Sequence record: MK774614.2
Reading direction: 5' to 3' (one strand)
Length of the DNA stretch: 64,000 nt
Shown: in pieces, positions 3,507 through 54,132 of the stretch
Layout: each line of letters opens with the position of its first letter
How positions within the stretch are numbered: the stretch's first letter is position 1
Translations under genes and position numbers: made by a program
Notes under the pieces: generated by a model
The model's input: only the letters and a program-made list of their open reading frames with translations
Told to the model about the DNA's origin: nothing
Database searches by the model: none

Positions 3507-3965
3507 ATGTTTAAATATCTATTTGGGAAAATGCGTCAAAATGATGAAACGGGTGAAGAAACGCATCGCGAAGACGCACTTGCAATTACCCGCCGTTGTG
3601 ATTCGTATCAGCATCGTGACATGGCACGTGATATTTCAATGATTCCGTTTAATGGCGGGTTTTGTGGTTCTGCATTAAATTTTGATAACGCCTATCTTCC
3701 AGGACAGTTTAACGGAGAGTCAGTTTCCTGTCGGGTTAAAACCGAAGGAGATGCAAAGAAGATTGAAGAGTTTGTTAAAGAAACAGATATCTTCGTTTGT
3801 AAGTTCGGTAAATCAGAATACCTGGTTGCGCTCTTTATTCCAAAAGGTAATACGGTTGCTGATCCCTACAATAAAGAGATCAAACCGAATGATTGGAAGA
3901 AAGTTTCTCCTGAAGAGTTTTGTGCGCTCTTTAAAGAAGTCTTTGATAATCCCTATTACATGTAA
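3507..3965 (+). CDS. Hypothetical protein
   Basis: 152-aa ORF with GAGGA RBS. Confidence 0.75.
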   Translation: MFKYLFGKMRQNDETGEETHREDALAITRRCDSYQHRDMARDISMIPFNGGFCGSALNFDNAYLPGQFNGESVSCRVKTEGDAKKIEEFVKETDIFVCKFGKSEYLVALFIPKGNTVADPYNKEIKPNDWKKVSPEEFCALFKEVFDNPYYM

Positions 3966-3968
3966 TAA

Positions 3969-3998
3969 AGCTAGAGAACCCCAAAGGGTTCTCTAGCT
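3969..3998. terminator. Terminator between convergent genes
   Basis: 13-bp stem agctagagaaccc-caaa-gggttctctagct; poly-T downstream. Confidence 0.75.
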
Positions 3999-4013
3999 CA
4001 ACATACTTTTTTT

Positions 4014-4694
4014 TTAAATTGTTGCTGGATAATAAACATCTAACGTTTGCAAAGTTAAATTAGGGGCTTTGAATTTTGCTGTTCCGATGGTTCTTGCTTG
4101 AATTGTTTTTGTTGCGAATCCTTCCACGTTAGGATTCACATCCTTGACCAATGTAGTTAATCCCACAGAGTGTTGACTATTATTGACAAGAACCTCCTCA
4201 GGGATCTCTATATCTAATTCTATCTCGTCCCAATAGATTTCCCCTAATGCTTTCCAGCAATCGTCTACAGTGTGCTTAGTGGGGTTTAATAAGAGCACAT
4301 ATTTGTTTTGATCATTGATGTGATAAAGTCCAAACGTATATGCCCCATTACCAATCCCTGCTTCAAACTCCACCAAGGTCATTGAAGGAACATCAATAAA
4401 ATGATCTTTATAAATTAATGGTAAATCGACCATCTTCAATTCTGCATCCGCGTAAAAGTATTCAGTGCGTCTTGATAGAAAACAAGCGATCAATTTTCCA
4501 TTGGGAAATAACGTCGGTGGTTCTATTTGAACATCTTCGTTTTTAAGGTCGTAATATTTGGCAATCGCTTCGTCGTATTTCTTCAGGCCTTTTTGAGCGA
4601 TCATCTTATCGGCAAGATCAGCTAAATACAGTTTTACCGATGAGAATAACGGATCTTTAATCCGCTTACTTCTAACAATCTTGTCAGTTATCAT
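4014..4694 (-). CDS. Hypothetical protein (lone minus-strand gene, possibly late/structural)
   Basis: 226-aa ORF with no competing plus-strand ORF; bounded by a hairpin and a divergent promoter. Confidence 0.7.
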   Translation of the reverse strand: MITDKIVRSKRIKDPLFSSVKLYLADLADKMIAQKGLKKYDEAIAKYYDLKNEDVQIEPPTLFPNGKLIACFLSRRTEYFYADAELKMVDLPLIYKDHFIDVPSMTLVEFEAGIGNGAYTFGLYHINDQNKYVLLLNPTKHTVDDCWKALGEIYWDEIELDIEIPEEVLVNNSQHSVGLTTLVKDVNPNVEGFATKTIQARTIGTAKFKAPNLTLQTLDVYYPATI

Positions 4695-4745
4695 GATTTA
4701 ACACCCGGTTCGCAATTATAAGGTATTTGTTCAAACAATCAATCT

Positions 4746-4770
4746 CTATAATTTTTCAAGTAGATATTAT
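4746..4770 (+). promoter_or_regulatory. Putative phage early promoter
   Basis: ctataatttttcaagtagatattat; matches the repeated motif. Confidence 0.7.
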
Positions 4771-4810
4771 CTTTATGTACGAATACCGGGATTATTCATT
4801 AGGAGGACAT

Positions 4811-5230
4811 GTGTTTACTGGACCAGAATTTGATTACTACTACGAAGGAACGGTTGATGAAAATATCAGAGCGTTCTTTGGGAGTAAACAAGCGATGCAT
4901 GAAAGTAAACTGTTTCGCCAAATGGAATCGGTGAAATTGGAAATGATAGTCTTACAAGGGGATTTGGAAATATTTCAATATAAACTAGGGTTTATTAATC
5001 AATGTCGAGTAAATAGTTTTAATCGCTCTCTAAACGCGTTTATTGATCTTTGCGATATCCACATGTGTTTTGCTACTAAGCACGGGTTGGAAGTGATTAC
5101 AGAAGCATCTAGACGCATTAGAAAACGGTTTAAACGTTTAATAGCTCAACTTTACGATTTCAGTAAAGAAATCGAATTATTGGATCAACAATTTAGTATA
5201 AGGAATAAACATGACTCTCATTGCATTTGA
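4811..5230 (+). CDS. Hypothetical protein
   Basis: GTG 4811 follows AGGAGG and lies downstream of the promoter; the longer 4727 start overlaps the promoter. Confidence 0.65.
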   Translation: MFTGPEFDYYYEGTVDENIRAFFGSKQAMHESKLFRQMESVKLEMIVLQGDLEIFQYKLGFINQCRVNSFNRSLNAFIDLCDIHMCFATKHGLEVITEASRRIRKRFKRLIAQLYDFSKEIELLDQQFSIRNKHDSHCI

Positions 5231-5915
5231 CGGTAAGCATTTAGTTGTTGATGGCGCTTCCACATTAGAAAATCCCCGCTATAAAAAGTCAGGGGATGTG
5301 TTTCATTTAATGAAAATTGTTGTCCCTAATTTTAAGTGGTATGATGAAGAGAGTAAACATGAGATCTGTGCGTTAGTCGGTACTGGAACGACATCTGATA
5401 TTAAAGATGTTATCGAAGAATTAATGGTCGCTGGAAAACTTGAGTTACCGGGTCACGATCATTTTACTCGTATACAAAAGCTATTAAGAGAACGTGTTCA
5501 CTGTCAAATTGTAACAGTTGGTTTTGATTATTCAACAGGCGAGAAACAACCTTGGGTCGGATCTCTTTTCAAAAGTATCGATTTTGAAGATAGTTATTTT
5601 CGTTACAGCAGGTTTAATCCAACCATCCCAGCGATTGCTGGTTATACAGAAGAATTCCCAAAATGGGAACTTGGTAAGGGATGGAATAATGCAGTTGAAA
5701 TCGTATCGTTGGGTGCTGTATTGTATCCAGAAAAGATCGGTGGACTGTTAACTCGGTTTAATTTGGAAACAGGTAAACTCGATCATCCTAAATTAACCGG
5801 AAATGGTCGGTTAAATAAAATGCTCTATCAGTATGAAAAGGAGCGCCTGGCGGAAATTAAAAAGAAATTCTCAAAAGCCCGCGAGTTTGTCGCTAGTCCT
5901 ATTAATACGTATTAA
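5211..5915 (+). CDS. Ntn-hydrolase (HslV/proteasome beta-like) peptidase candidate
   Basis: Starts M-T-LIAFDG; VVDGAST resembles HslV AGDGQAT; a Lys follows, then LVGTGTTSD like HslV FAGGTAD. Confidence 0.5.
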   Translation: MTLIAFDGKHLVVDGASTLENPRYKKSGDVFHLMKIVVPNFKWYDEESKHEICALVGTGTTSDIKDVIEELMVAGKLELPGHDHFTRIQKLLRERVHCQIVTVGFDYSTGEKQPWVGSLFKSIDFEDSYFRYSRFNPTIPAIAGYTEEFPKWELGKGWNNAVEIVSLGAVLYPEKIGGLLTRFNLETGKLDHPKLTGNGRLNKMLYQYEKERLAEIKKKFSKAREFVASPINTY

Positions 5916-39454: not shown

Positions 39455-42400
39455 TTACAGGGTTACCCCTGAATTACCGCGTTGCTGTTGAGAGACAGAC
39501 TTGTTCAAATTATCCAGAGACTGGGTCAAGGCCGCCATGACATTCGCCAATTGTTCGTCTTGAACTTTGAGCGGACCGTCTGGGAGTTTAACTTCAGTAA
39601 CTGGAGCAGGTTTAGCAATACTCGCCGGAGGAGTTAGAGTAGACTTCGATGAACCTGAACTTGCAACGGTTCCAGGTGAACTTGGAGCGCTTGCTGGAGC
39701 AGGTGTCTGAACCACGCTTGGCGCTGCTGCGCTTTGAGTACCAGATTGTTTTGGCGTTGCAGTGGCTGTCGAGACATTACGAGTAGTATCTCCTGCATTT
39801 AACTGTTCATCCAATCGATCTTTACTCTTAGCGTTAGCGCCACCCAGGGTTCCACCATTGGCAGTCGTATCAGCAGCCGAAGCTGTTTCTTGTTCCAAAT
39901 CCCCTTGTGTCTCCACGGTCATTGGAACAGAGAGTTCTCCGTTGTTTAACTTTTGGAGATACTCCTGATAATACTTGCGTCGTTCATCGGTACCTGGGAC
40001 TGCGTTACCACCGTTGATCCCTCTGACTGCTGTTTCGAAGTTTCCTGTTTTGCCAATGTCCATCATGGCTTTGCTGTTCTTTAAGAACCGCACTGCGGAC
40101 TCTGCCATCACTTGTGGGTCTTCTGAAACCAATCTTGGATTATCAACAACAGGCGCACCTGTTTCCTCTTGAAACTTCTTGTAGTTTGCTTTGCCTGTTA
40201 ACTGGAACAGTCCACGTCCTCTATACAACCAACCGTCTTCTGGTTTTTCATTACCGAGTGTGGGACCTTTTGGTGCACGTCCATAAACATACATGGCGCG
40301 TTGCATAGGACTAAGGCCAGCAACCTTTTGGGCGGTGGCGGCATCAGGAATGTTTCTAAACAACTTCTGAAGTGTCTGTGCACTCCAGTTAGTGTTTTCA
40401 ACTGTCGAGGAGTAGTTCCCCGTTTCCTTTTTCGCCATGGCCAATCCAAGAGCGATCTGTTTCTTGTCAGTGATCCCATGTTTGAGCATGGTATTTAACA
40501 TTAACCGTTCACCCTCTTCTGGATTAAACCTAATCCCTCGGTCATCCCCAGCTTGTTTTTCAAACTCTGGGTTAAAGCCCTCAGCAAAGTTTCCATCATA
40601 ACGCCCGCCTTGAGCGGCATCATTAGCGATGTTAGCCCAACCTGATCCACCCGACACACTTGGACGCCCATTAACGCCATATGCCATTCCAGAACCACCA
40701 CCATTGATTCCCACGTTTCCGCTGGCCATTTGGCGGTTTTTCCCGTAAACCTGATCAAATACTCGGTTGGTATTATTACGAACAGTATCACGGTCTGGTT
40801 TTGTATTCGCTGCGCGTTCCTGAGCGGTCTTGGATTTCTCCTCTTCGAGTTCAGGTTCTTTGAGTCTTGCTTGAGTTGCCTTGATGTCCAACATCTTCAA
40901 GAACTTTTCAGCCCGAGTATTTGCAGACCCAGAAACAGAGTTCGGGAACGGACCTACAGTCACTTCCCAAATCCCCACCTCTTTATCTTGGTAGAAAACA
41001 CGAATCTCAGCTAACTCTCTTGCAATTACCACTTTATTCGTTGCAGAAAGTTGTTGCCATACTCGTTGTGGTTTTCCGCTCCGATACAGTTGACACCGTT
41101 TGATGTACGTTGACAATACCGGGAGGAAACGGTTTTCATACCAATCTAACCAGCGAGATTCACTGAGTGGATCTTCAATACGGAACATTGGTTTAAAGAG
41201 TTGCAATACCTTTGCCGGAACACCAATAAACTTAATCTCTTCACCAATTACATTAAAGAGGTTTTCAGTATAGCGTTCAAGTTTCAATACTGCATCAACA
41301 CGCCATGGCATGTTGTCCACATTACCATAGACCGCTAATCTGGCCCAGGTGAAAGGATCCATGTCGCTAGAACCTGCCGCATGTAAATCAGAGATATCAA
41401 TCTCTTGGACTTCAGCAGGACTCTTAAACCGTTCATCCATCTTGCGCTGCTGATCAGCAGCTGCAGTGCGACCAAAGAAATCTTGGGCTGCACCTATAAT
41501 GGGATTACTGGAGCGTTCCTCTACCTCCAAGTTCTTTTTACGGATTTCATCAGCGGTAGCGAGTTTGAGATTTTGCTTTTCTTCAGGGAATTGTTTTTGC
41601 AATTCAACCATCAGATCTTGAACACGCTCATTGGTCGCGTACTCATGCATAATCCCCACTTCTGGATCAATCTGAACAGCGATTTTAAGTGGATACGGTT
41701 CAACAGTGGTAATGGATGTTTTCAACCGTTCAACGGTCGCTCTGACATCAGGAGAGGTGCTTAGATCAAACTCATTGATATCGCCCAATCGAGCAACAGA
41801 GATCCCCACGTTATAAATTAAGAAGATCGGCTTAAAGCGAGCCATAAACCAGGTTTTGGCTTGATCAAAAGGAATGTTTCCACCCCCAGCTGCAAATTGT
41901 TTCACAATCTTATCAATCGGAACATCATCTCGCAACCCACCCCGGTTAGCAATGATGGTGACATACGGCGTCAGGTTTTGTTCCAATTGATCGATTCGAA
42001 GGGCTAAGTTATTGTCCACATGACGAAGGCCGTACTGTGCGTAACGAATGCGTTTTTGGATGGTGAACGTCTTTGCAACATCGCGAGTTAGGGAAGAGGG
42101 AGCAATCACACCGTCACGTTGGTCCTCATAAGCGTCTCGTTCAGCCTTTGATAAAAAGAGCTTCCCGTCATCACTGAAGATTTTCCCGTCACGTTGTTTA
42201 TCAACATCCATCCCCATGAACCCAAGGATCCCTTTAGCTGCCCAGTTCTGGGGAACAAAGTCAGCCAGTTGATCCATGAAACCACTTGAACCATTTTGCT
42301 TATCCCGGGCAGCGCGTGCTTCTTGCCGAGCTAAATAGTCCAGTTCAGATTTAGTACGGGGTTGTTCGTAAATGGGTTCTACCGGGTTTCCAAACTCATC

Positions 42401-45400
42401 TACATTAGGAACTTCCGGATCTTCTCCAAATAGATTTGTTCCAGCGTAAAGCGACCCACCAGCAATAGCTGCGGCACCTGCCGCTTTTGCCCACCCAGGC
42501 ATCCTCATTAACCCACGACCAATCCCTGCTAATGTCCCACCACGGCGACCCGCTCCCCCTAAGAGGGAACCAAGTCCACCCAAGGCACCGCCACCAAGCA
42601 TCTTTCCAAGCCCTGTGAACCCCCACTTAAGCAATTTATAAATAGGAGACGCAACACCCATGACCCCAGAGAAGAGCAAGGAACCGATCTTACCCAACCG
42701 GCTTGCAGAAGCCCCTAACGAACCTAAGATAGCCCCGCCGATGGTACCGATAGGATTACGAATTAAATTCATCCCAAAGGTGCCCAGTCCACCCATCATC
42801 TCTAAGAGACGTCCAAAGAGTCCTTTCTTTTCAGTCGGTTTATCTTCTTTCGTTCCTCCAGACAACGAGCTGGCAATATCCTGAATGGCTTCGTTGGTTT
42901 TTTCTTGGGACGCTTCTTTGGCTTTCTTCTCTTTATCGGCTAACGAGTTCAACCGCTCCTCAGTAGAACCTCCAAGAATATCACCGAGTTCAGCATCGTC
43001 CACACCAATACCAAATTGCTTTGATAAAAGCGCATAGATGCGATCCAGACGACGTTCTACACCAGACCCTGATACTCGCCCACCTTTCCCACCGGATTGC
43101 TCTGACGCTCTCTGAAAGCCAAAACGACCCATGAGATTATCAAAGCCAGTGCGAGCAAGTCCTAAACCAGATCCAACAACATTACTGGTAAAGGCACCAA
43201 CACCCCTAACTGCTTGCCCAGTTGCTGTAACAAGTCCGGCTGCGTATTCTTCTTCAGAAATTAACTGGTTAGCGTCAGAGTCATAAACGGCACCTTTGAT
43301 TTCGTTCCACCCAGCGATTGGGTGATAATTCCCGTTATCATCAATGAAATATTCACGAGACTTAAATCCAGCTGCTCTGAGTCTGGGATTCTTTTCACCT
43401 TTGACATAAACATCTTGCTGATAGATCAACTCCTTGCCCATTTGAGCGATCGCTTTAATCCGCCCAATGGGATCGACAAACTGGTATCCAGAGATAATGG
43501 CGTTTTTGGCTGTTTCAATTCCGGAAAGAACAACCGCCCTTCCATCTGGTCCAAAGATCTTAGCACCCAACTCTTTGATCCCAATGACAACCTTTTCAGC
43601 GGTATCAAAAATAGGACCACGAATATCTTGCCACGTTTTAATGACACGTTTGGTAATTGCGTCAATATAAATCCCAGCATTGAGCTTGGCAGACGAAAGG
43701 AGTGTCTCCCCTTTATCATCAAGGATGTCTTCCGTATCAGCTGGTTTATCCCCAGCAGCTTTCTGATCTTCTTTACCCCAGCGTTGAACAACTCCACCCA
43801 GTAATGCGCCACCTGCAATCATGGAACCTGCCAATAGGGGATTTTGAACAAAACTCGCCCCCACTGTTCCAAGCAGTGACCCAAACACGATGGGGGAGTT
43901 CGCCATCAACATGTCCATTCCCCGCCCAAAGATATTAGAGGGGAAAAGATCTTTGACTTTGTCCATGAAGTTGCGTTTAGTTTGCGCTTCTTGCCGTTCT
44001 TCGCTACTGGTTTGTTTACGACTAAAGAGTTTTCCATCCCTGACGGTTTGCATAAACTCTTCCATCATGGTTTCTATCTTCCCGGTGTGAGAAGAGATCG
44101 ACCCCAGATGGTCAGTAACAGTAGACCCAAACTTATCACTGATAGAACCCTGCTCGGGAGAACCTTGAAGCGGTTTGTCAAACTGCGCTAGTACGTCAGT
44201 GAGTTTGGACACATTACTATTGAGTTCTCCAAACACGCCGCCCAGTTCATTATTGCCAGACCCGCCAGAACTTGACTGTTTCGGGATGGTAAATCCAGGC
44301 TTTGTTGCACTTGGACCACTGGACTTCCCGGACATTCCGCGCAAGGTCGGGTCATTGGGATTATCCATGAACTGTCCGATGCGGCTATGGAAGATCTCCA
44401 TGTTGACTTTGTCAATGCCGTTTTCAGTGTAAATCACACCTAAGTCACGCAGCATCTGTTCATTGCCAGTGGAACGCAGTAAGTCAATGCGCTCTGCCAC
44501 GTTCGGGAAAATTTCTTTTAAGTTCTGGGCGGCTGCACCTGCTTTATTTAAACGCTCTTGGGCTTTGTCGTTTTTCATGGTAGACATGAAATTCACCCGC
44601 TCTAATCCACTGGTGGATTTAAACAGATCGACATCTCCTGCATCTAAATCAAAGTGACGTTTAACAACCGCATGGATTTCCTTTTGAACAGAACTAGACA
44701 CACCCGGAATATCACCAAGATAATAGAAGGGATTAAATCCTTTCTCCTTATCCACATCCCGCGCTATTTGCTGAGCAAACGCTTTACGAGCACTACTAGA
44801 AAGTTGTTTGCCGGGATCGATGGAATCAACAAACTCCAGGGCCGCAGAGGAGTAGCGAGAGAACTCGGAATACGGCATCAAGTCAGCTGCAACAGAACTC
44901 TTACGATCTCCGGCGTCCATGAACTGACCGCGCATGTGAGAGTAAGAGATCATCTCTTTCATCTCACCGGTGCGTAACCCTTCCACGCTTTGATGAATTC
45001 GACCCAGTAATCCAGGGAGGACTTCATTCAGCGTAATGTTGTTCATCTCCTTCCAGATACCTGGCTGGTTCAGATCCTTTACATTACGCCGAGCTAGTGT
45101 GTATTGCGTTCCCCGTGCCTTTGTCATTTCTGACATCATGGAGTTGATCGCTGCTTTACCGCGGTTACTGGCAGCGTTTTGGATTTCCCAACGTGCGCGC
45201 CCCATGGGCTTTTGGCCTGCTGGAAGACTGTCTACGTAATCTTGGTAATCAAGAAAAGGCATCTCATCTAAGTTTTGCCAATCTTCGGCCATATAGTTAA
45301 TGAGTCCTGTGGCGTTGTTTGCCATGTAGGAACCTTTATGACCGACCTTGGACAGCTTAGCGTATTGCTCTTGAAATTGCTTGGCACGTTCTGGATTTTT

Positions 45401-46519
45401 CGCAGCCAGTTTATTAATCCAATCCCGCCCCTTACCGCGTTCAAAGAAATAGGGTGCGTTGTTGATCAGGGATTCAGCTAGGCGCTTACCGACCATGCTC
45501 CCAACCATGCCTTTGGACATGGGCATGTCAGAAGACATCTCAAGGATTTCAGCAAAACCCCCCAAGATGTTATTCATGTCGCTATAAACTTCGTTACGGG
45601 CATTTTTCCCGAACTTATCTCGCATCAATCCTGAAAGACCCCCGACACGATTTCCAACCGTATTAAAGAGTCGATTACGCATGTACGCTTTAGACGCAGT
45701 AAAGTTAGAGGTTTTCTCGTAATCAGATTTCCCCGAGTTAAGCACAATCTTCTTTAACTCAGCAATTTCAGTATGGAGTCCCTTCTCCATGAATTTGTAA
45801 TATTTAATATCAGCGGTGTAGCTTTTGGCCATCAGGTTAATTTTAGCCTGATCCATTTTATATTGTACATTGCGCTGATAGTCCAGCAATTGACGAACAC
45901 CACTGTCGATGCTAATCAATTGTTTATTCCCAGACATGATTGCGCCATTGAGCATCCCGCCCACGTGTGCTGACATCTGGTTTAAGCTCTCACCTAGCGA
46001 GGCGAACATTCCTTCTTGCCGATTCATGGACTCTTCGATGGAACGACTGACGTCATATTCGTCTGGAGTTTCCATTGTAGGGACACCACTACCGGAACTG
46101 TAATCATACTTTTCCCAGCTGGAGAAATCCTTTTGAGAGAAGTTTTCCATTCCACTTGCCAGTCGTCCAAAGCCTTTACTAGCCGCCTTTTGTGAGAGCT
46201 GACCGGCAATGCTTTGTAACGATTTTGTGGACTCGTAGTTCTGTTCTTTAAAGTCTGTGGTCAGTTCATTTAATCGAGAACTCGCCCAACTGACGCGGTC
46301 GAGTGCATTACTAAATGACGGGGGAAGAATCGTACGCAGCGTACGCATCCGTGCTTCACCAGACCCCACAGTTTCATCCACCACACCTGACAGGAACCCG
46401 GATGTGACACCGCCGACAAACCCACGCTTGGCATACGGATCCATATCAAAATCCATGTCCAGGTCAAATTCCCCACCAAAGGGGTCATCCCAGTCCATGT
46501 TAAAATCATCTTTAGCCAT
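39455..46519 (-). CDS. Giant tail (tape-measure-like) protein with C-terminal GH19 lysozyme domain
   Basis: 2354 aa; Gly-rich TM-like region; AKKETG, YRGRGLFQLTGKANY, INGG; divergent from the vRNAP beta-prime gene like phiKZ gp181. Confidence 0.85.
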   Translation of the reverse strand: MAKDDFNMDWDDPFGGEFDLDMDFDMDPYAKRGFVGGVTSGFLSGVVDETVGSGEARMRTLRTILPPSFSNALDRVSWASSRLNELTTDFKEQNYESTKSLQSIAGQLSQKAASKGFGRLASGMENFSQKDFSSWEKYDYSSGSGVPTMETPDEYDVSRSIEESMNRQEGMFASLGESLNQMSAHVGGMLNGAIMSGNKQLISIDSGVRQLLDYQRNVQYKMDQAKINLMAKSYTADIKYYKFMEKGLHTEIAELKKIVLNSGKSDYEKTSNFTASKAYMRNRLFNTVGNRVGGLSGLMRDKFGKNARNEVYSDMNNILGGFAEILEMSSDMPMSKGMVGSMVGKRLAESLINNAPYFFERGKGRDWINKLAAKNPERAKQFQEQYAKLSKVGHKGSYMANNATGLINYMAEDWQNLDEMPFLDYQDYVDSLPAGQKPMGRARWEIQNAASNRGKAAINSMMSEMTKARGTQYTLARRNVKDLNQPGIWKEMNNITLNEVLPGLLGRIHQSVEGLRTGEMKEMISYSHMRGQFMDAGDRKSSVAADLMPYSEFSRYSSAALEFVDSIDPGKQLSSSARKAFAQQIARDVDKEKGFNPFYYLGDIPGVSSSVQKEIHAVVKRHFDLDAGDVDLFKSTSGLERVNFMSTMKNDKAQERLNKAGAAAQNLKEIFPNVAERIDLLRSTGNEQMLRDLGVIYTENGIDKVNMEIFHSRIGQFMDNPNDPTLRGMSGKSSGPSATKPGFTIPKQSSSGGSGNNELGGVFGELNSNVSKLTDVLAQFDKPLQGSPEQGSISDKFGSTVTDHLGSISSHTGKIETMMEEFMQTVRDGKLFSRKQTSSEERQEAQTKRNFMDKVKDLFPSNIFGRGMDMLMANSPIVFGSLLGTVGASFVQNPLLAGSMIAGGALLGGVVQRWGKEDQKAAGDKPADTEDILDDKGETLLSSAKLNAGIYIDAITKRVIKTWQDIRGPIFDTAEKVVIGIKELGAKIFGPDGRAVVLSGIETAKNAIISGYQFVDPIGRIKAIAQMGKELIYQQDVYVKGEKNPRLRAAGFKSREYFIDDNGNYHPIAGWNEIKGAVYDSDANQLISEEEYAAGLVTATGQAVRGVGAFTSNVVGSGLGLARTGFDNLMGRFGFQRASEQSGGKGGRVSGSGVERRLDRIYALLSKQFGIGVDDAELGDILGGSTEERLNSLADKEKKAKEASQEKTNEAIQDIASSLSGGTKEDKPTEKKGLFGRLLEMMGGLGTFGMNLIRNPIGTIGGAILGSLGASASRLGKIGSLLFSGVMGVASPIYKLLKWGFTGLGKMLGGGALGGLGSLLGGAGRRGGTLAGIGRGLMRMPGWAKAAGAAAIAGGSLYAGTNLFGEDPEVPNVDEFGNPVEPIYEQPRTKSELDYLARQEARAARDKQNGSSGFMDQLADFVPQNWAAKGILGFMGMDVDKQRDGKIFSDDGKLFLSKAERDAYEDQRDGVIAPSSLTRDVAKTFTIQKRIRYAQYGLRHVDNNLALRIDQLEQNLTPYVTIIANRGGLRDDVPIDKIVKQFAAGGGNIPFDQAKTWFMARFKPIFLIYNVGISVARLGDINEFDLSTSPDVRATVERLKTSITTVEPYPLKIAVQIDPEVGIMHEYATNERVQDLMVELQKQFPEEKQNLKLATADEIRKKNLEVEERSSNPIIGAAQDFFGRTAAADQQRKMDERFKSPAEVQEIDISDLHAAGSSDMDPFTWARLAVYGNVDNMPWRVDAVLKLERYTENLFNVIGEEIKFIGVPAKVLQLFKPMFRIEDPLSESRWLDWYENRFLPVLSTYIKRCQLYRSGKPQRVWQQLSATNKVVIARELAEIRVFYQDKEVGIWEVTVGPFPNSVSGSANTRAEKFLKMLDIKATQARLKEPELEEEKSKTAQERAANTKPDRDTVRNNTNRVFDQVYGKNRQMASGNVGINGGGSGMAYGVNGRPSVSGGSGWANIANDAAQGGRYDGNFAEGFNPEFEKQAGDDRGIRFNPEEGERLMLNTMLKHGITDKKQIALGLAMAKKETGNYSSTVENTNWSAQTLQKLFRNIPDAATAQKVAGLSPMQRAMYVYGRAPKGPTLGNEKPEDGWLYRGRGLFQLTGKANYKKFQEETGAPVVDNPRLVSEDPQVMAESAVRFLKNSKAMMDIGKTGNFETAVRGINGGNAVPGTDERRKYYQEYLQKLNNGELSVPMTVETQGDLEQETASAADTTANGGTLGGANAKSKDRLDEQLNAGDTTRNVSTATATPKQSGTQSAAAPSVVQTPAPASAPSSPGTVASSGSSKSTLTPPASIAKPAPVTEVKLPDGPLKVQDEQLANVMAALTQSLDNLNKSVSQQQRGNSGVTL

Positions 46520-46547: not shown

Positions 46548-48427
46548 ATGAGTAGCCGTAAACCAACTAACTTCACCTTGCTTGACCCAAATACATTTCC
46601 CTACCGGACGATGATCCCGGTAACGAGCGGGGATGCGTTCGAAGGTCAAACAACCAACCTCCATGAGGAAGGCCTCTATTCTACTAAGATCTTTGGTCGA
46701 GTAGGGACAGAAGAACGTGACAATACTGAATCTTACATTGACACCGTCCTTCCTATTTTTAACCCCACTTATTTTAAAGCCCTTGTTTCATTAAAAAGCA
46801 TGTATGCTGAAATTATCAAGGGCAAAGTTTATGCGGTATGGGACCCAACTGAACGGGATTTCATAAAATCCAATGTACTCGAAGGTGACACGGGATTCGC
46901 GTTCTTTATGTCTCATTTTGGGGAATTGGATCCCAAAGAAAATGAGTCCTTTAAACGCAGTCAGAAAATCTCGGTGGTAAAGAAGTTCTTTGACCGAGCA
47001 CTTCATACTCGTATTCCCGTTTACCCCGCAGGTCTTCGTGACATTGAGATCGGTCCAACTGGTCTAGTAACTGAATCTGAAGTGAACGATTTGTATCGTA
47101 AGCTTTTTTACCGCACTCGCTCACTGAACATCAAGCACCCCGATCCCAGTGATCCTGTTTATGACAATATCCGCTGGGGTGAACAAGAAGCGCTGAATAA
47201 CATTGCTGACTACTTCTTTGGTATCCAAGAAGGCAAGCGCGGCATGATGCAGCGTAAAGTCGCCAGACGTTCTATCCACTCTGCAACACGAAACGTCATT
47301 GTCTCGCGTAAAGTTTCTGTGGAGAACATGGATGATAACGTGACGGGTGATCCTAACTCGACCATCATTGGTTTATACCAAGCGTTGTTGGGTTTTTCAT
47401 TAATTGCCCAACATGAGTTACTAAACGGGTACTTATCAGAAGTCTTTACACAAGGGATTACCTCAGCGAGGTTGGTCGATCCTAAGACATTGGAAAGTGT
47501 CTATGTAGAAGTCGATGCCTATACCGTAGACAAATACACGTCAGCCGATGGTATAGTTTCCCTGTGCAATGGGTTCAGTAACCCTAACTTGAGAAACAAA
47601 GAAATTCGAATTGCTGGCCATTACCTGGGATTGGTGTATGATGACGGTGAGAAAGTAGCACTGGTTCATGATATCAATGACCTTGGGGATAACCTGAATA
47701 AAAAGTTTGTAAAGCCGGTCACGTACATGCAGTTCTTTTATATGCAAACAGCACGGGCCATTGAGAAGAAGATGCTCCAAGTAACTCGTTATCCGATTAC
47801 CGGCATCGGGTCGATCTTTCCTTCTCGGGTATTCATTCGTCCAACTAACGCCACCTCCAGTCATCGGATTTTGGTGGACTTGGATGGGAGTGAAATTGGA
47901 CAGTTCCATTTCTTCCCGGAGTACTCAAAAGAGGTCAGTTACTTTGATGGCATGTCCATTGCCAACATTAGACTGGGATTAGCTGGTGGTGATTTTGACG
48001 GTAAAAACGGTTGCCGCTTTAGGCAGTAATGTCTATTGAAACTGTGCGGAATAAAGCAAGGAGTCTCTCCATTTAGAGATAACTTGAACCGAAGGCTAAG
48101 AGTAATATCTTGGTCAGGGGCAGAGCGTAGATGGTGATCCCTTTCATTAAAGGACTATAATCCATCCAAGAGGCCGCACCATCCTACTGGGATGAAAACG
48201 TACGCCGATACCCGGAGTGATCTGGGCGTGAAGATAAAAAACTTCACTTTAACACATTGGACCAACTATCAGCAAACAGCATCATGGCAGATGACTCTAT
48301 CTATGAGATCTCTGAACTCTTTGGTAAACGAATCTTTTATATTTCAGGTGCAGGTGATTTTCTTTATGATCCTGTTCAAGAGCCTCACGAATTCCTTCTG
48401 CGTTCACTCACAAACGGATTATCATAA
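46548..48427 (+). CDS. Virion RNA polymerase beta-prime subunit (phiKZ gp180-like); exons 46548-48002 and 48260-48427
   Basis: Splicing restores GGDFDG/DQLS (catalytic DFDGD) and gives 540 aa ending at TAA 48425-48427; also EGLYSTKIFG, QVTRYPI. Confidence 0.9.
48003..48259 (+). mobile_element. Group I intron (ORF-less, 257 nt) in vRNAP beta-prime
   Basis: Exon-terminal U, terminal G; P1 CGGU/GCCG; P10 GGUU/GACC; P3 GUGCGG/CCGCAC; P7 GAGCGUA/UACGCC; P8 CAUCC/GGAUG. Confidence 0.88.
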
Positions 48428-51400
48428 TGCTCTCTAAAGCACAACTTGAACTGTTCGGTATCTCAGGTACCGAAGCACTCCCCTATTCTCAGTTTCTGCG
48501 AGTATGGGGAACACGAGAACGGATTAATGATATTATTAATCCCAAGTATACACCCATTGGTGATGTGATGTTGCCGCGTAACGCGGTCTTCCATTATCAA
48601 CAACAACTTCCTAATGAAACGGGTCCGAGTAATCAGGCTTCCTTTATCAGTAATTTTGATAAACGGATCAACATGTATTTTTGGCCTGACTTTGATGTGG
48701 TATTGGGGACTTATAAGAAAGTCCCTTATAACTTTAATGCCAAGATCCGGGAATATGAAGCAGGACACTTTAATTACTATCGTGCGCGTAATTACCAAAC
48801 GGTGATTAACAAAGACTATGAGTTGCTTGTAAACAACATGGCAATGAGTCAAGTCCCGGTTGTTTATCGTCAGTTAACTGTCTTTACACCATTTCAAAAG
48901 CAATACAACATTTTGCATAACTTGATCTTGGCAGTAAACCAGTTCGCGCAACACGACATTCATCAGTTTGTCGAATTCAAGCTTCCCCGGTCTTTCCCAA
49001 GTTACCGAATGCTGTTTGAGTCCTTTAAACGGTATCGGAAGTTCTTTAAAGACGGTGAAGTGTCTCGGTATGAAAAAGAAGCGTTGAAAGTGTTTCAAGC
49101 AGATGGCAGCTTCTGGCTACTGGATTTGTTTGGAATCTTGATCGGCTATGATTTTGCAGAGTTTTCGCAATTTAACAAATTGACGGATAAAGCAAAGGGT
49201 CAGTTAGAACTGGTCTTTACTTATGAAGGAAAGTGCTGGATTGTTAATCTTCAAACGTTGATTAATTTGATCAGTTACTCTGATAAGGAAACCGACACTG
49301 AACCGAGCAATGCTAAGTTCATCTATTTTAAACGTTTCTACCTCGCTCTCATAGGACTTGTGACGCCACTGGTAGAGGAAGTAACACATGAATCCAGTAC
49401 CCAAGAAGAAGTTGTTTCAAATCAAGGAAACGAAAATCCCAAGGACCGGGATGATCAATCGCAGTCAAGCAAAAAAGGATCTGGAGGAAAGTCTGAAGAA
49501 GCTTCCCAGCTGGATGCTAATTCTCGTGATCGTAGTCTGGCTGACCTTTACACCAGTGGTAAAGGATCTGGTCATGTGGATAATCCACCCGCCGAAAGTG
49601 AGGGAGGAGGAGTTGTTGAGGAAACTTCGGATTCCGTTACCGACGAAGAGTCTCCCGAGCAACTATTCTCAACAGACGTCGACGACAGTGTATTTGAGCA
49701 AGCCAGTATTGAAAACGCGTCTGTAAGTGTCGGTAAGAATGTCTACAGCCCAACAGTGACCATTGAACGTCTGATGGAACAACGGGCACGCAAAGGGATG
49801 TTGACAACCAAAGAGCAAGAGTTCTTTACCAAGGCTGCCGAGAGTTATAAGGATATTGTTATTGGTGGGAGGACACTCGAAGAAATCGTCTCCATCTCCC
49901 ATAAAGACCTGGTGATGGCCCCGGAAAAGATTGCTCCAGACTCCCCGGTTATTTATGACAAATCTGTGCTTCAATCCCGTACGCAACAACTGGGGACTGA
50001 ATACAATCAGAAGTTCCTAGAACGTGACATCATGAGTGCGATATTGAACGCCGCCCAATTAGGCGGTGTTGCCTTGTTGGATCTGGATCGGGAAAGTATC
50101 GTCACCGCTGATTCGGCGTATGATGTTTACACAATGAAGTTCCAACCCGTGGGTGAAGGGAATCAATCCACCAGACGTTTTCGTATCCCTAAGGTAGCTG
50201 AAGACAATACCTTTACTATCAATGGCGTAAAGAACTATGCGCAATTGGTTCGAGTAGAAGCCCCAGTGAGGAAGATTGGGAAACGTAAAGTCAATATCAC
50301 GTCTTATTACGATAAGCGCTTGATGATTGAACGTTCTCCTTATCGTGCTGATGACTTTGGTGCTTGGTTGAAAACAAACATTCTTCAACGCAGTTATGTA
50401 GACAAATCCATCACTGTCCAGTTAGGTAGTTTTGCTCCCTTTAAGAAAGAAGCGTGTTGGTATTACTCTGTTTTGGCAGAGCGGTTTAAGTCCATCACTA
50501 TTCGTGATATGGTCCTTAACTTTGACACCTCTATTTATTTGACTGAACATAAAGAGTGGAAAAAACTCTGCAATGATGAAAGTTGGGTAATTGGGGAGGA
50601 ACACGGTAAACCGATTCTGATCGATAACGCCGGTTTGATTACGGTGGATGGGGTTGAGAAAGGCTATCTGGAAGAGCTCATTGGACTGAATGTGGAAAAG
50701 GCACCTGTTCCCAATTCCACTATTTATGTCAATGGATTTAAATTCCAAAGTGTGGTTGTGCTTTCTTATTGGATTGGTTTCACTGAGCTGATGCGTCGAT
50801 TAAAACCGATCTATCGGACGGTAGAACCCGGAACACGCCCTAACTTGACCAGTAACGAATACCTGATCCAGTTTGCCGATGAACGTCTTGTGTTGGATAG
50901 ACGAGACACGTTAGCCACGCTGGTGTTTTCTGGGCTGGCTAAATTACCGGGACTTCGAAACTTCTCACGCGCGCAGCTTGATGATCCGAATGTCTGGTTC
51001 TCTATTGTAAGTGACCCGCGGGTGAAACCGTCTCATTTTAAAGAGATGGAACAGATGTTTGATCAGTTTATCGATCCTATCACTGCCCGGGAGTTGACCA
51101 GACGCAAGTTCCCCTTGGAATTAGACAAGTTGGTTATTCGGGCTATTGAGATGCTCCTTAATAATGAAGCATCCCATGAAGTCGAAATCTCTGAACAGCG
51201 TTTGATCGGCTATGAACGTTTTGCGGGTCATGTTTATCGTGAGATGGTTAAGAGCACTCGTCAATTTAGGAACAAGCCAGGCGGAAATAAAAAGACGTTT
51301 GACTTGAACCCTGAAGCGATCATGATGAACATTTTGACGGATGCGTCTTGTCAACCAACTGAAGAAGTGAACCCCATTCACCAGATCAAACAAACTGAGG

Positions 51401-53179
51401 AAGTGACCTTTGGTGGGACTTTTGGTCGAAGTGATCGTGCGATGGTGAGACGGACACGGGGCCAACTTCCTAACTACGAAGGGATTATTTCTGAAGCAGG
51501 GAAAGACTCTGGTAAAGTTGGCTTTATTTCCTATCTGACTTCTGATGCAAAGATTGTTGACTTAGGTGGAAACGTAGACACGTCTCTTCCAACCACTGAT
51601 GCAGGTCGACTTTCTGTTACATCAAACCTTCTTTATGGCTCAACACGGGATGACAGTAAACGGTAAGATGCCCTCTATATACATTGATGTCTATAGAGAA
51701 CTAATTGCCCATTCACTGGGAAACAAGTGAATGCATTAATCCTTAATTGCTGGGAAGTGCTCTGTGATGCTTACGCTAAAACGGAATAGGAAACTATAGA
51801 CGGAACAGTGTGAAAATGTAAGCGGAGAGACAGTCAGCAGCGGAGCACCTACGTACATTTGCGATAAATGGATAGGGTGAGCGTTCAACGACTAGGGGTG
51901 AAACTCCCCGTAGCTGGGACATGGAATGTTCCTACCAAACAGGATTACCTTACTGTGTTGCTGAAGAAGCAACAATACAGTTGGTTGAAATATAGTCTGC
52001 TCCTTATGGCGACATAAGGCGGGTGCCAGGTATCGCACCGGGTCTTAGGATAAGACTGGACAGAAGGCGTTGTTCTCGACCGTGCAGCTAAGTCAATGGA
52101 TGGCAACAGACTCCTATCAGGTTTCTCCACTTCGTACTTCTTATGACAGTGCAGTGGGATATCGTAACTTTGAACTTTATACCTCTGTTGCAAAACAAGA
52201 CGGAGTGGTGAAAGAAGTTACAGCAGATGGGATTATTGTTGAATACGTTGATGGAACAGAAGGGAAGTTTTTCTTAGGATATGAAATTGGAAAAGGTGCG
52301 GGTGAATATCACAAACACTTAAAAGTCACTGATGTAAAAGTAGGACAGAAAGTTCCCCAGGGGATGATTGTTGCGTGGGATAGTTGTTTCTATACCCGTG
52401 ATAGTTTAGATCCTACCCGTGTTCTGCTTAAGACTGGGACACTTTCTCGGATTGCCTTGATCGAAGACCAGTTTACCTTTGAAGACTCCATTGGGATTAC
52501 GCAGGAATATGCCAATAAGAACAGCACACCGTTCTTAAAGCAGAACCATTTCAGAGTTGAATACGCGCAAGTTGTAAAGATGTATTGTAAAGTAGGTGAT
52601 GAGGTAGAATACGACCAAGTCCTTGCTGATATCAAAGATCAAAGTGCTGCAATGTTCGATGATGAATTTAGCCCAATGGCAGGATTGGATCGACTGGGAA
52701 TCAAGCAGGTCAAAGCAAAACAAGCAGGTCGGATTGCCAAGATTGAAGTGTTGTATAATGGCGATTACGATGATGCGGAAGAGTCTGTGAAACAGTTGAT
52801 TAAACAGGCCGATGGTGTTCGCAGTAAAGCGGCTAAATACCGTAACCTGTATGCACCAGATGGGAACGTAGGTGGGAACACCTCCATCGGTAAATCCAAG
52901 GTCTATCCGAATACCTGTACTGTTAATATCTACATCGAATCAAGTTTGGTGACCACCGTAGCGGATAAGTTCGTGGTGGGGAACCAGATGAAAGGGACAG
53001 TTGGCTTTATTTATCCCAGCCAAATCACGACACCGGATGGTCGCAAAGTAGACATTACTTTCTCATTGAAGTCGCTCCTTAACCGAATGGTATTGAGTCT
53101 TCGTGATAAATTGGTGGCTAACGAAACTAACCACGTGTATACGTCCAGAATGATTTCGAAATATGGGAGATATGAGTAA
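48427..53179 (+). CDS. Virion RNA polymerase beta subunit (phiKZ gp178-like); exons 48427-51664 and 52068-53179
   Basis: Splicing gives 1449 aa with junction DDSKR-S-LFSTVQLSQ, in register with E. coli beta DDANRALMGANMQRQ; DKFVVGNQMKG, FEDSI, DSGKVG. Confidence 0.88.
51665..52067 (+). mobile_element. Group I intron (IA2-like, ORF-less, 403 nt) in vRNAP beta
   Basis: P AAUUGCUGGGAA (51745), Q GUCAGCAG (51833), R GUUCAACGACUA (51883), S GAAAUAUAGUC (51987); P3 UAAUCCU/AGGAUUA; U before and G at the splice sites. Confidence 0.9.
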
Positions 53180-54132
53180 TGGCTAATAGCGAGAAGGATG
53201 TTTCTGTTATCAATGGGATTCAGACCACCCTCTCGCAACTTTCTCTGTACAAAGGCCGTGTAGACGGCCTTTTCGGAAAAGGTTGTCGAGATGCTGTGAT
53301 CCACATGGTAAATGTGGTTTATCCCGGCAAGGTGATGAAGTACCCTGAAAATAATTATGAAGCAAAAAGCGTTTACACGTTTCTTCAAACTGTATTGGCA
53401 CAAGTGGGTCTGTACACCATTGCGATTGATGGGAAATGGGGAAACGGAAGTGCAACTGCATTTAATGGGCTAGTGGATCAGTACCGCACTGCATCAACAA
53501 CCCAGGGTGGAGACCAACCAGTTCACTTAACGGAAGCGCAGTTTAAAGCGATGTTGCCATCTGCTAACTGGGATAAGGTCCCGGTTTATCTTTCGGCTAT
53601 TAACGAAGCAATGGAAGTGTTTGATATCACCACCCCGCTTCGTAAAGCTCACTTTATGGCACAAGTTCTTCACGAAACTGCGAATCTGAAATACAGTGAA
53701 GAGATTGCGAGTGGGAAAGCATATGAGGGTCGTGCTGATTTAGGTAATACTAAACCAGGTGATGGCCCCCTCTTTAAAGGTCGTGGTTTGCTTCAGTTGA
53801 CGGGTCGGGATAATTATCTGAAATGCCAAACTTATCTGCGTCAACGTTTAAACGATCCCCGTTTTGACATTACCTCTGATGTAACCAAAGCCAGTCAGTT
53901 GTCAACCAATCCGCTTTATGCGGCCCTTGCCTCTGGGTATTTTTGGCATTCCATTAAGCCAAAACTCAATGCCACAGCAGACAAGGACGACATTTACTGG
54001 TGTTCTGTTTATGTCAATGGCTATGCTAAACAAACTCATCCCTATTACCCTGATAGAGATAAAGAACCGAATCACATGAAAGAACGTGTTCAAATGCTCT
54101 CTGTCACAAAGAAAGCGTTTGGTCTGATTTAA
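53179..54132 (+). CDS. Modular endolysin: peptidoglycan-binding repeats plus GH19 catalytic domain
   Basis: Two PG-binding-like repeats (VDGLFGKG, IDGKWGNG); HFMAQVLHET; YEGRADLGN; FKGRGLLQLTGRDNY. Confidence 0.88.
   Translation: MANSEKDVSVINGIQTTLSQLSLYKGRVDGLFGKGCRDAVIHMVNVVYPGKVMKYPENNYEAKSVYTFLQTVLAQVGLYTIAIDGKWGNGSATAFNGLVDQYRTASTTQGGDQPVHLTEAQFKAMLPSANWDKVPVYLSAINEAMEVFDITTPLRKAHFMAQVLHETANLKYSEEIASGKAYEGRADLGNTKPGDGPLFKGRGLLQLTGRDNYLKCQTYLRQRLNDPRFDITSDVTKASQLSTNPLYAALASGYFWHSIKPKLNATADKDDIYWCSVYVNGYAKQTHPYYPDRDKEPNHMKERVQMLSVTKKAFGLI

Follow-up and report, generated by a model that had tools for sequence, protein, structure and literature searches.

The 64,000-nucleotide (nt) stretch analysed here (the window) comes from Aeromonas phage CF8 (MK774614.2), genus Chaoshanvirus, which it matches at 100% over the interrupted gene, with window base 46548 corresponding to record base 220698. 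In it, the gene for the N-terminal beta-prime subunit of the putative virion RNA polymerase (vRNAP) is interrupted by an insert at 48003-48259 that is very probably a compact, IA2-like group I intron lacking an open reading frame (ORF). The anatomy of the element, the covariation of its helices, the reading frame restored by its removal and its kinship to proven introns can be read directly from the comparisons described below, while splicing and catalysis would follow the established group I mechanism. CF8 is one of the phiKZ-like jumbo phages of Aeromonas, a group encoding two multisubunit RNA polymerases together with chimallin (PMC10673249). The kind of element is well known, and group I introns at the active sites of essential phage genes, including a virion polymerase gene of a chimallivirus, are well documented (PMC12908238, PMC11620839). 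The present member is unannotated in public records and is missed by the standard RNA-family model; our literature search for 'group I intron' together with 'DFDGD' found no paper, and the word intron is missing from the papers on phages ZPAH34 and AerS_266.

The interrupted catalytic motif and the restored reading frame

The three aspartates of the DFDGD motif bind the catalytic Mg. The insert lies within this motif, at DFDG/D, so that two aspartates of the metal-binding triad stand before it and the third stands after it. As an earlier sequence-only reading of this DNA had reported, the ORF at 46548-48029 runs to ...LAGGDFDG and then into KNGCRFRQ and a stop. The same reading had proposed that removal of 48003-48259 restores DFDG-DQLSANSIM and a 55-codon second exon overlapping the next start codon, and this is confirmed: the TAA of exon 2 overlaps the ATG of the beta gene at 48427, and the two exons together give 540 amino acids (aa), collinear with intron-less proteins of 539-542 aa, and match one profile, phrog_2986, from end to end (positions 5-487 and 488-539 of 539). 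The insert is absent at exactly the same point from AerS_266, AVP1, pAEv1810, D6 and OBP, whose proteins present the uninterrupted DFDGDQLSANSI and read GDFDGD(Q/A)LSANSI without a break; all five thus continue through DFDGD-x-L-S, a continuation on which the sequence-only reading had staked its case.

Alignment of the DNA with the intron-less alleles places the gap at GGU|...G|GAC. The protein comparison by itself leaves the boundaries movable by one base, and it is the group I rule, by which the intron is preceded by U and ends in G, that fixes them at 48003-48259, 257 nt preceded by U48002 and with G48259 as the last base. On neither strand is there an ORF of more than 36 aa overlapping these positions. 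The same insert, of 255-258 nt, is found at the same point in the Aeromonas phages ZPAH34, ACP1, PS1, PS2 and AhC3_1. Stops occur 1-8 codons into the intron, with their position and the tail that follows DFDG varying from phage to phage; in CF8 the stop is at 48027-48029.

That naive annotation would call the subunit truncated had been foreseen, and the GenBank record of CF8 indeed lists a truncated hypothetical protein, CF8_0225, with a second and small one, CF8_0226, as an entry of its own. The PS1 and ACP1 records are annotated in the same way, as a truncated coding sequence (CDS) and a small separate CDS, and those of ZPAH34 and AhC3_1 leave exon 2 without annotation. Six deposited Aeromonas jumbo-phage genomes annotate an essential polymerase subunit as truncated, four of the six with an extra small hypothetical CDS, where the true product would be a 540-residue subunit with its DFDGD site intact.

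In the mechanism that we propose by analogy with other group I introns, the pre-mRNA would fold so that exon CGGU pairs with the internal guide GCCG, leaving a U.G wobble at the 5' splice site. Free guanosine bound at the G-C pair of P7 would attack after U48002, the terminal G48259 would then occupy the guanosine site, and the freed exon 1 would attack after G48259. The ligated GGU|GAC would join glycine to the third aspartate of DFDGD, giving the 540-residue subunit with the predicted junction peptide GGDFDGDQLSANS. Translation of the unspliced RNA would end 9 codons into the intron, at 48027-48029.

Predicted structure of the intron RNA

The fold of the insert was derived with RNAalifold from an alignment of five phages (CF8, ZPAH34, ACP1, PS1 and AhC3_1; PS2 was left out). 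This recovers helices P1, P2, P3, P4, P5, P6, P6a, P7.1, P7.1a, P8, P9 and P9.1 (Table 1), with compensatory changes in 20 of the 72 predicted pairs. In AhC3_1 the P9 stem is wholly replaced by such changes, as is P9.1 in ZPAH34, and P7.1 occurs in the compensatory variants GAUGG/CCAUC, GACGG/CCGUC and GAUAG/CUAUC. The minimum free energy of the + strand is -75.1 kcal/mol (z = -2.8 against shuffles; the - strand has z = -0.6).

P7, which is pseudoknotted with P3, was placed by hand, with G48123 and 48125-48129 pairing with 48201-48206. The sequence-only reading had described P7 as a covarying departure from the usual GACUA/UAGUC that keeps the guanosine-binding pair. This is borne out by the family of related RNAs described below, in which the pair at 48127/48203, G-C in CF8, is A-U in AhC3_1 and 30 others, while the guanosine-binding pair G48125-C48205, next to the bulged A48124, is G-C in 34 of 34 rows. 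Apart from P10, the remaining anatomy proposed in that reading holds equally: the insert is ORF-less, with U at the 5' junction, a terminal G and a P1 containing the U.G wobble; P3 (48044-48049/48174-48179) and P7 (GAGCGUA/UACGCC) are complementary where they had been placed and show covariation; and P8 is recovered by RNAalifold and paired across the family.

J4/5 GA, J5/4 AA, a 6-nt J8/7 and GNRA loops on P2 and P9 all fit group I introns. Between P7 and the 3' strand of P3, P7.1 and P7.1a form a single nested, covarying arm as opposed to two clear hairpins; an extension at P7.1 is typical of subgroup IA, and the intron is described here, tentatively, as IA2-like. As a separate observation, the automatic structure of the covariance model described below pairs a segment just 5' of the guide (A4 columns 8-12/532-536; ~48010-48013) with the conserved UAAC in the 3' tail (48250-48253). 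This pairing is present in 82% of cases, with both-sided changes in four of its four pairs, and may represent either a helix that aligns the 3' splice site or an artefact.

Table 1. Coordinates of the interrupted gene, the elements of its predicted intron and other introns in polymerase genes (window positions for CF8, locus positions for L081-L091; 'family' denotes the CF8-type RNA family).
Feature	Positions	Strand	Remarks
Exon 1, vRNAP beta-prime N-terminal (gamma-like) subunit gene (putative)	46548..48002	+	485 codons, ending GGDFDG; phrog_2986 positions 5-487, E 9e-177
ORF-less group I intron, IA2-like (predicted)	48003..48259	+	257 nt; structure, covariation, covariance-model link to Twort introns
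P1, exon CGGU + A48003 with UGCCG (48012-48016)	47999..48016	+	U48002.G48013 wobble at 5' splice site; pairs invariant in five phages
P2 hairpin, GUAA tetraloop	48020..48035	+	Compensatory changes in 5 of 6 pairs in five phages; 100% paired in 43 distinct relatives
P3 5' strand, GUGCGG	48044..48049	+	Partner 48174-48179; invariant in five phages; 88% paired, up to 5 pair types in family
P4 (48057-60/48083-86) and P5 (48063-68/48075-80)	48057..48086	+	RNAalifold and family pairing; J4/5 GA, J5/4 AA
P6 (48089-90/48118-19) and P6a (48094-101/48108-115)	48089..48119	+	97-99% paired; compensatory changes in P6a
P7 5' strand, GAGCGUA	48123..48129	+	A48124 bulged; partner 48201-48206; 99% paired in family
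P7.1 (48130-34/48162-66) and P7.1a (48140-44/48149-53)	48130..48166	+	Extension between P7 and P3'; 98% paired
P3 3' strand, CCGCAC	48174..48179	+	RNAalifold and family pairing
P8 hairpin	48180..48194	+	93% paired, multiple pair types
P7 3' strand, UACGCC	48201..48206	+	Preceded by J8/7 AAAACG; family pairing
P9 (GNRA loop; 48211-16/48221-26) and P9.1 (48228-33/48242-47)	48211..48247	+	98-100% paired
Terminal G (omega-G), 3' splice site	48259	+	In all five Aeromonas phage introns and inspected family members
Exon 2	48260..48427	+	55 codons, DQLSANSIM...LTNGLS, and stop; phrog_2986 positions 488-539; same continuation in intron-less homologues
Second ORF-less group I intron, vRNAP beta gene	51665-52067	+	403 nt; Rfam Intron_gpI 41.6 bits, E 3e-7 for window
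L082 intron	~3929-5645		GGD|YDGD; encodes 421-aa HNH_3 protein
L086 intron	~3943-5074		GAD|FDGD; holds 213-aa ORF
L091 intron	~3941-4437		DYDGD|Q; ~500 nt, no ORF
L081	3900-5760		5' splice region and HNH ORF of L082-type intron; 3' end of L091-type intron

A wider RNA family and its link to recognised introns

A 17-mer from the P4'-P6 core identifies 46 viral loci in IMG/VR, nearly all of which share 130-225 nt of similarity with the insert. A covariance model (R1) was built from the five Aeromonas inserts alone, on the automatic RNAalifold structure of the intron-only alignment, and its search returned 58 matches, most of them full-length at 80-146 bits. Over 43 distinct rows, 93% of cells pair and both-sided changes are seen in 60 of 66 pairs; none of 500 shuffles reaches any of these measures, and slid controls pair in 34-41% of cells. 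The structure underlying R1 mispairs the guide sequence with a strand of P3 and contains neither P3 nor P7, which were counted separately by script; since both are absent from the model, their pairing constitutes a fair test, and the share of paired cells is 88% for P3 and 99% for P7, compared with 14-50% when the partner is slid.

The CF8-type family comprises at least 40 phage and prophage elements, mostly of 180-360 nt, from IMG/VR (L009-L054), Klebsiella phage phiKp_32 (L055) and Listeria phage LIS04 (L056). A scan for open frames joining the two flanks allows many offsets and over-calls boundaries, and only cases inspected by eye are used here. In these, U precedes the intron and G ends it, and the guide tracks the exon, with UUCGGU/GCCGAA and GUCGGU/GCCGAC beside the CGGU/GCCG of CF8. 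Members are found in unrelated genes, inside long open frames; one such gene encodes a minor tail protein. Others directly adjoin ORFs for GIY-YIG or HNH endonucleases. We also observed CF8-type elements in tandem with Rfam-positive group I introns, with three in a row at 7043-8188 of L011, and others lying directly 3' of GIY-YIG or other endonuclease ORFs.

A scan with a group I covariance model, which the sequence-only reading had suggested as a check, returned nothing: Rfam Intron_gpI (RF00028) gave no match to the insert at the gathering score, at E<=10 on 47900-48400 (501 nt) or at E<=0.01 on the whole window. The same scan of 15 family loci called no CF8-type element. The sole Rfam match on the local slice, to a CRISPR repeat (E 1.6), was dismissed as chance. 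According to a recent survey, phage variants can escape the Rfam and GISSD models, and subgroup IA2 is heterogeneous (PMC11878797). A lineage with an unusual P7 that is invisible to the Rfam group I model implies that surveys based on that model undercount phage introns.

The link to recognised introns is provided by R1, which at lower scores also matches places called as Intron_gpI by Rfam in L011, L052 and L042. In the whole 130.7-kb genome of phage Twort its matches are confined to the three orf142 introns (E 5e-6, 1e-4 and 8e-3; 15-26 bits), which Rfam Intron_gpI scores at 64-101 bits and one of which, the IA2 ribozyme orf142 I2, has a crystal structure (cited in PMC3984707). The low R1 scores indicate that the kinship between the CF8 and Twort introns is distant.

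Alternative explanations

Several points weigh against a self-splicing intron in a virion polymerase gene. Rfam Intron_gpI fails to detect the insert at any threshold tried. P1 has four exon pairs and one or two intron pairs, no more. P10, which the sequence-only reading had included in its core, is possible as 4 base pairs in CF8 (GACC with GGUU) and shrinks to 2-3 in the other four phages, so that it stands as a potential pairing in CF8 and is weak and not conserved among its relatives. In each of the five phages the intron closes with an in-frame TTG or ATG (TTG at 48257 in CF8), from which exon 2 could conceivably be translated separately. The virion-polymerase label depends on the annotation of homologues and on synteny, and splicing is deduced from DNA.

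In a first alternative, the gene is truly split into two polypeptides, exon 2 being translated from the TTG at 48257 and the insert being an unspliced intron relic or spacer. In its favour are the in-frame start codons and the separate CDSs presented by GenBank. Natural splits are also known in the RNA polymerase genes of jumbo phages (PMC7598289), and long-read transcriptomes gave no sign of splicing at the introns that had been predicted around phiKZ gp56, gp72 and gp179 (PMC10914365). Close upstream of exon 2, however, no Shine-Dalgarno-like run was seen near the TTG, and the UG before exon 2 is accounted for by the conserved 3' end of the intron, common to family members in unrelated genes. 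Compensatory changes preserve every helix of the catalytic core, a constraint not expected of a relic; the tails that follow DFDG differ in every phage; and a split at this point would part the third catalytic aspartate from the first two. We therefore regard a true split as very unlikely.

A second possibility retains the group I intron but has it depend on a phage or host protein cofactor, or splice conditionally, so as to gate production of the virion polymerase. Many group I introns need protein help in vivo, and the shortness of P1 and P10, a P7 unlike the usual GACUA/UAGUC and the failure of Rfam to recognise the element could all be taken in its favour. The core is nevertheless complete, compact and akin to that of the Twort orf142 introns, which self-splice in vitro, and the sequence offers no sign of a cofactor; such dependence seems to us very unlikely.

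Ribosomal bypass of the kind known from T4 gene 60, an intein or an assembly artefact can be set aside almost entirely. In favour of bypass, the codon before the gap is GGU (Gly) and a GGA lies across its end. At 257 nt, however, the gap is far longer than the gene 60 hop of 50 nt, and no stop follows the take-off codon; an intein is ruled out by the in-frame stop at 48027-48029 and by a length that is not a multiple of 3, and an artefact by the presence of the same insert in six independently sequenced phages.

Distribution and possible mobility

Among the Aeromonas phages, presence of the intron is patchy on a tree of the spliced coding sequences. ZPAH34, which has it, is sister to AerS_266, which lacks it; PS1 and ACP1 (with) group with AVP1 and pAEv1810 (without); and AhC3_1 (with) stands by itself. 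PS1 and ACP1 share 94-96% identity with AVP1, and within 30 nt on either side of the insertion site they carry 15 and 14 mismatches to it respectively, against a background of 0-3 per 30 nt; those flanking mismatches that were read in the alignment are mostly synonymous, and among them are the bases by which the exon fits the guide. The exon ends in GACGGU, fitting the guide, in all intron-containing alleles and in GAUGGA or GAUGGU in the intron-less ones. Between phages with exon identities of 69-74%, the identity of the intron itself is 88-91%.

The divergent flanking tract resembles a co-conversion tract, such as recombination would leave on transferring or removing an intron, and together with the patchy spread it suggests mobility. 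With no ORF above 36 aa overlapping it, the CF8 intron encodes no homing endonuclease of its own, and it has probably moved either through an endonuclease acting in trans or through plain recombination during co-infection. The patchy spread would be best accounted for by phages recombining in shared hosts, perhaps after cutting by an endonuclease encoded elsewhere (trans or collaborative homing, PMC3984707). These phages are under development against Aeromonas in aquaculture, where co-infection and recombination among the members of a cocktail matter.

The polymerase gene and its neighbourhood

The product of the interrupted gene is probably a subunit of the virion RNA polymerase, as judged from the annotation of homologues and from synteny. 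In the window, a 2354-aa tail/lysozyme protein (39455-46519, - strand) is followed by the interrupted beta-prime gene (46548-48427) and by a large beta-like gene that starts at 48427. The gene order of Pseudomonas phage OBP is identical, and there the annotation of the polymerase gene pair names virion-associated beta-prime and beta subunits. In phiKZ, gp181-gp180-gp178 follow the same order.

Neither exon has a match in Pfam. A profile of the five intron-less homologues gives weak collinear matches to beta-prime and cyanobacterial gamma chains in the PDB (E 0.03-0.2), in which the motifs GLF..RIFG and LPV.P..LR...IN.LYR are matched and NADFDGDQ is aligned to GGDFDGDQ; these matches suffice for placing the motifs but are too weak for modelling the protein. 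The beta-prime gene of CF8 ends ~55 residues past the metal-binding motif. Jumbo-phage beta-prime is known to be divided past the double-psi beta-barrel, where the cyanobacterial protein is divided too (PMC7598289), and the position of the CF8 gene end fits this known split.

Of the proteins flanking the polymerase genes, the 2354-aa product has an N-terminal match to a tail-fibre profile and C-terminal matches to endolysin/chitinase-like (GH19) profiles. A 317-aa endolysin-like protein is encoded directly past the beta gene (53179-54132, + strand).

Other introns in the polymerase genes

The beta gene of CF8 holds a second ORF-less group I intron, whose Rfam score (Table 1) lies below the gathering score of 50 bits. 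The two pieces of the gene, 48427-51664 and 52068-53179, correspond to positions 2-1053 and 1056-1422 of phrog_3148. Joining CGGU|CG at 51664/52068 restores ...DDSKRSLFS as in the intron-less AerS_266, again with U before the intron and a terminal G, and the insertion point lies three codons and 1 nt past the conserved DD. GenBank lists CF8_0227 as truncated, and the beta gene of PS1, at 3255 nt, is short as well.

R1 finds no CF8-type intron in 34 further, more distant beta-prime loci from viral contigs. In four of the 34, Rfam-recognised introns break the same motif, three at 51-79 bits, above the gathering score, and one (L081) at 38.7 bits, below it. In L082, L086 and L091, U precedes the intron and G ends it. 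In L081, which combines the beginning of one intron type with the end of another (Table 1), the YDGD codons are found nowhere in the locus, and a spliced product would therefore lack most of the catalytic motif.

The insertion points in jumbo-phage beta-prime genes, D|(F/Y)DGD, DFDG|D and DYDGD|Q, are adjacent, the others lying one to three codons from the CF8 site and holding introns unrelated to that of CF8. From these positions the metal-binding motif looks like a hotspot of insertion. One joint reading, which we offer tentatively and consider rather doubtful as a whole, is that the motif is a recurrent battleground of at least three unrelated group I lineages, in which the CF8-type intron is moved in trans during co-infection, by an endonuclease encoded elsewhere, and acts as a site-protection or competition factor between Aeromonas jumbo phages. 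Such invasions may be a living version of the process proposed to have split the RNA polymerase genes of jumbo phages.

Comparison with known systems

Three known systems invite comparison. ORF-less group I introns can be moved by free-standing endonucleases, in what is termed collaborative or trans homing (reviewed in PMC3984707). The CF8 intron resembles such introns in being ORF-less, in its position at a conserved active-site codon, in its patchy occurrence among close relatives and in the short divergent exon tract that accompanies it. It differs in that no endonuclease cutting the DFDGD site was identified in this analysis, and for CF8 it is the distribution alone that points to mobility.

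The introns of Twort orf142 are, like that of CF8, small and ORF-less, and have the same layout P1-UUU-P2(GUAA loop)-AUYGAAA-P3. In both, P7 and P3' are separated by an extension, P9 is capped by a GNRA loop, P9.1 is present and the 3' tail is of the UAACA type with G as its last base. The common P1-3'/P2/J2-3 layout and 3' tail are visible in the R1 alignment. Host gene and phage lineage differ between the two, as does P7, which is G(A)GCGUA/UACGCC in CF8 and GACUA/UAGUC in the Twort type, and the one nested P7.1/P7.1a hairpin of CF8 contrasts with the clearly separate P7.1 and P7.2 of Twort.

The third system is PhiPA3, whose vRNAP beta gene (gp211/209) contains a group I intron with the HNH endonuclease gp210 (PMC11620839). 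In both PhiPA3 and CF8 a group I intron lies in a phiKZ-like virion polymerase gene, beside conserved catalytic acidic residues, and is absent from close relatives. The PhiPA3 intron is in the beta gene and comes with a homing endonuclease, in contrast to the CF8 intron at 48003-48259, which is ORF-less and in the beta-prime gene. The CF8 intron would thus add a second virion-polymerase gene and an ORF-less case to PhiPA3, the one studied polymerase intron of a nucleus-forming phage, and, with its neighbours, would make the catalytic motif a repeated target of insertion.

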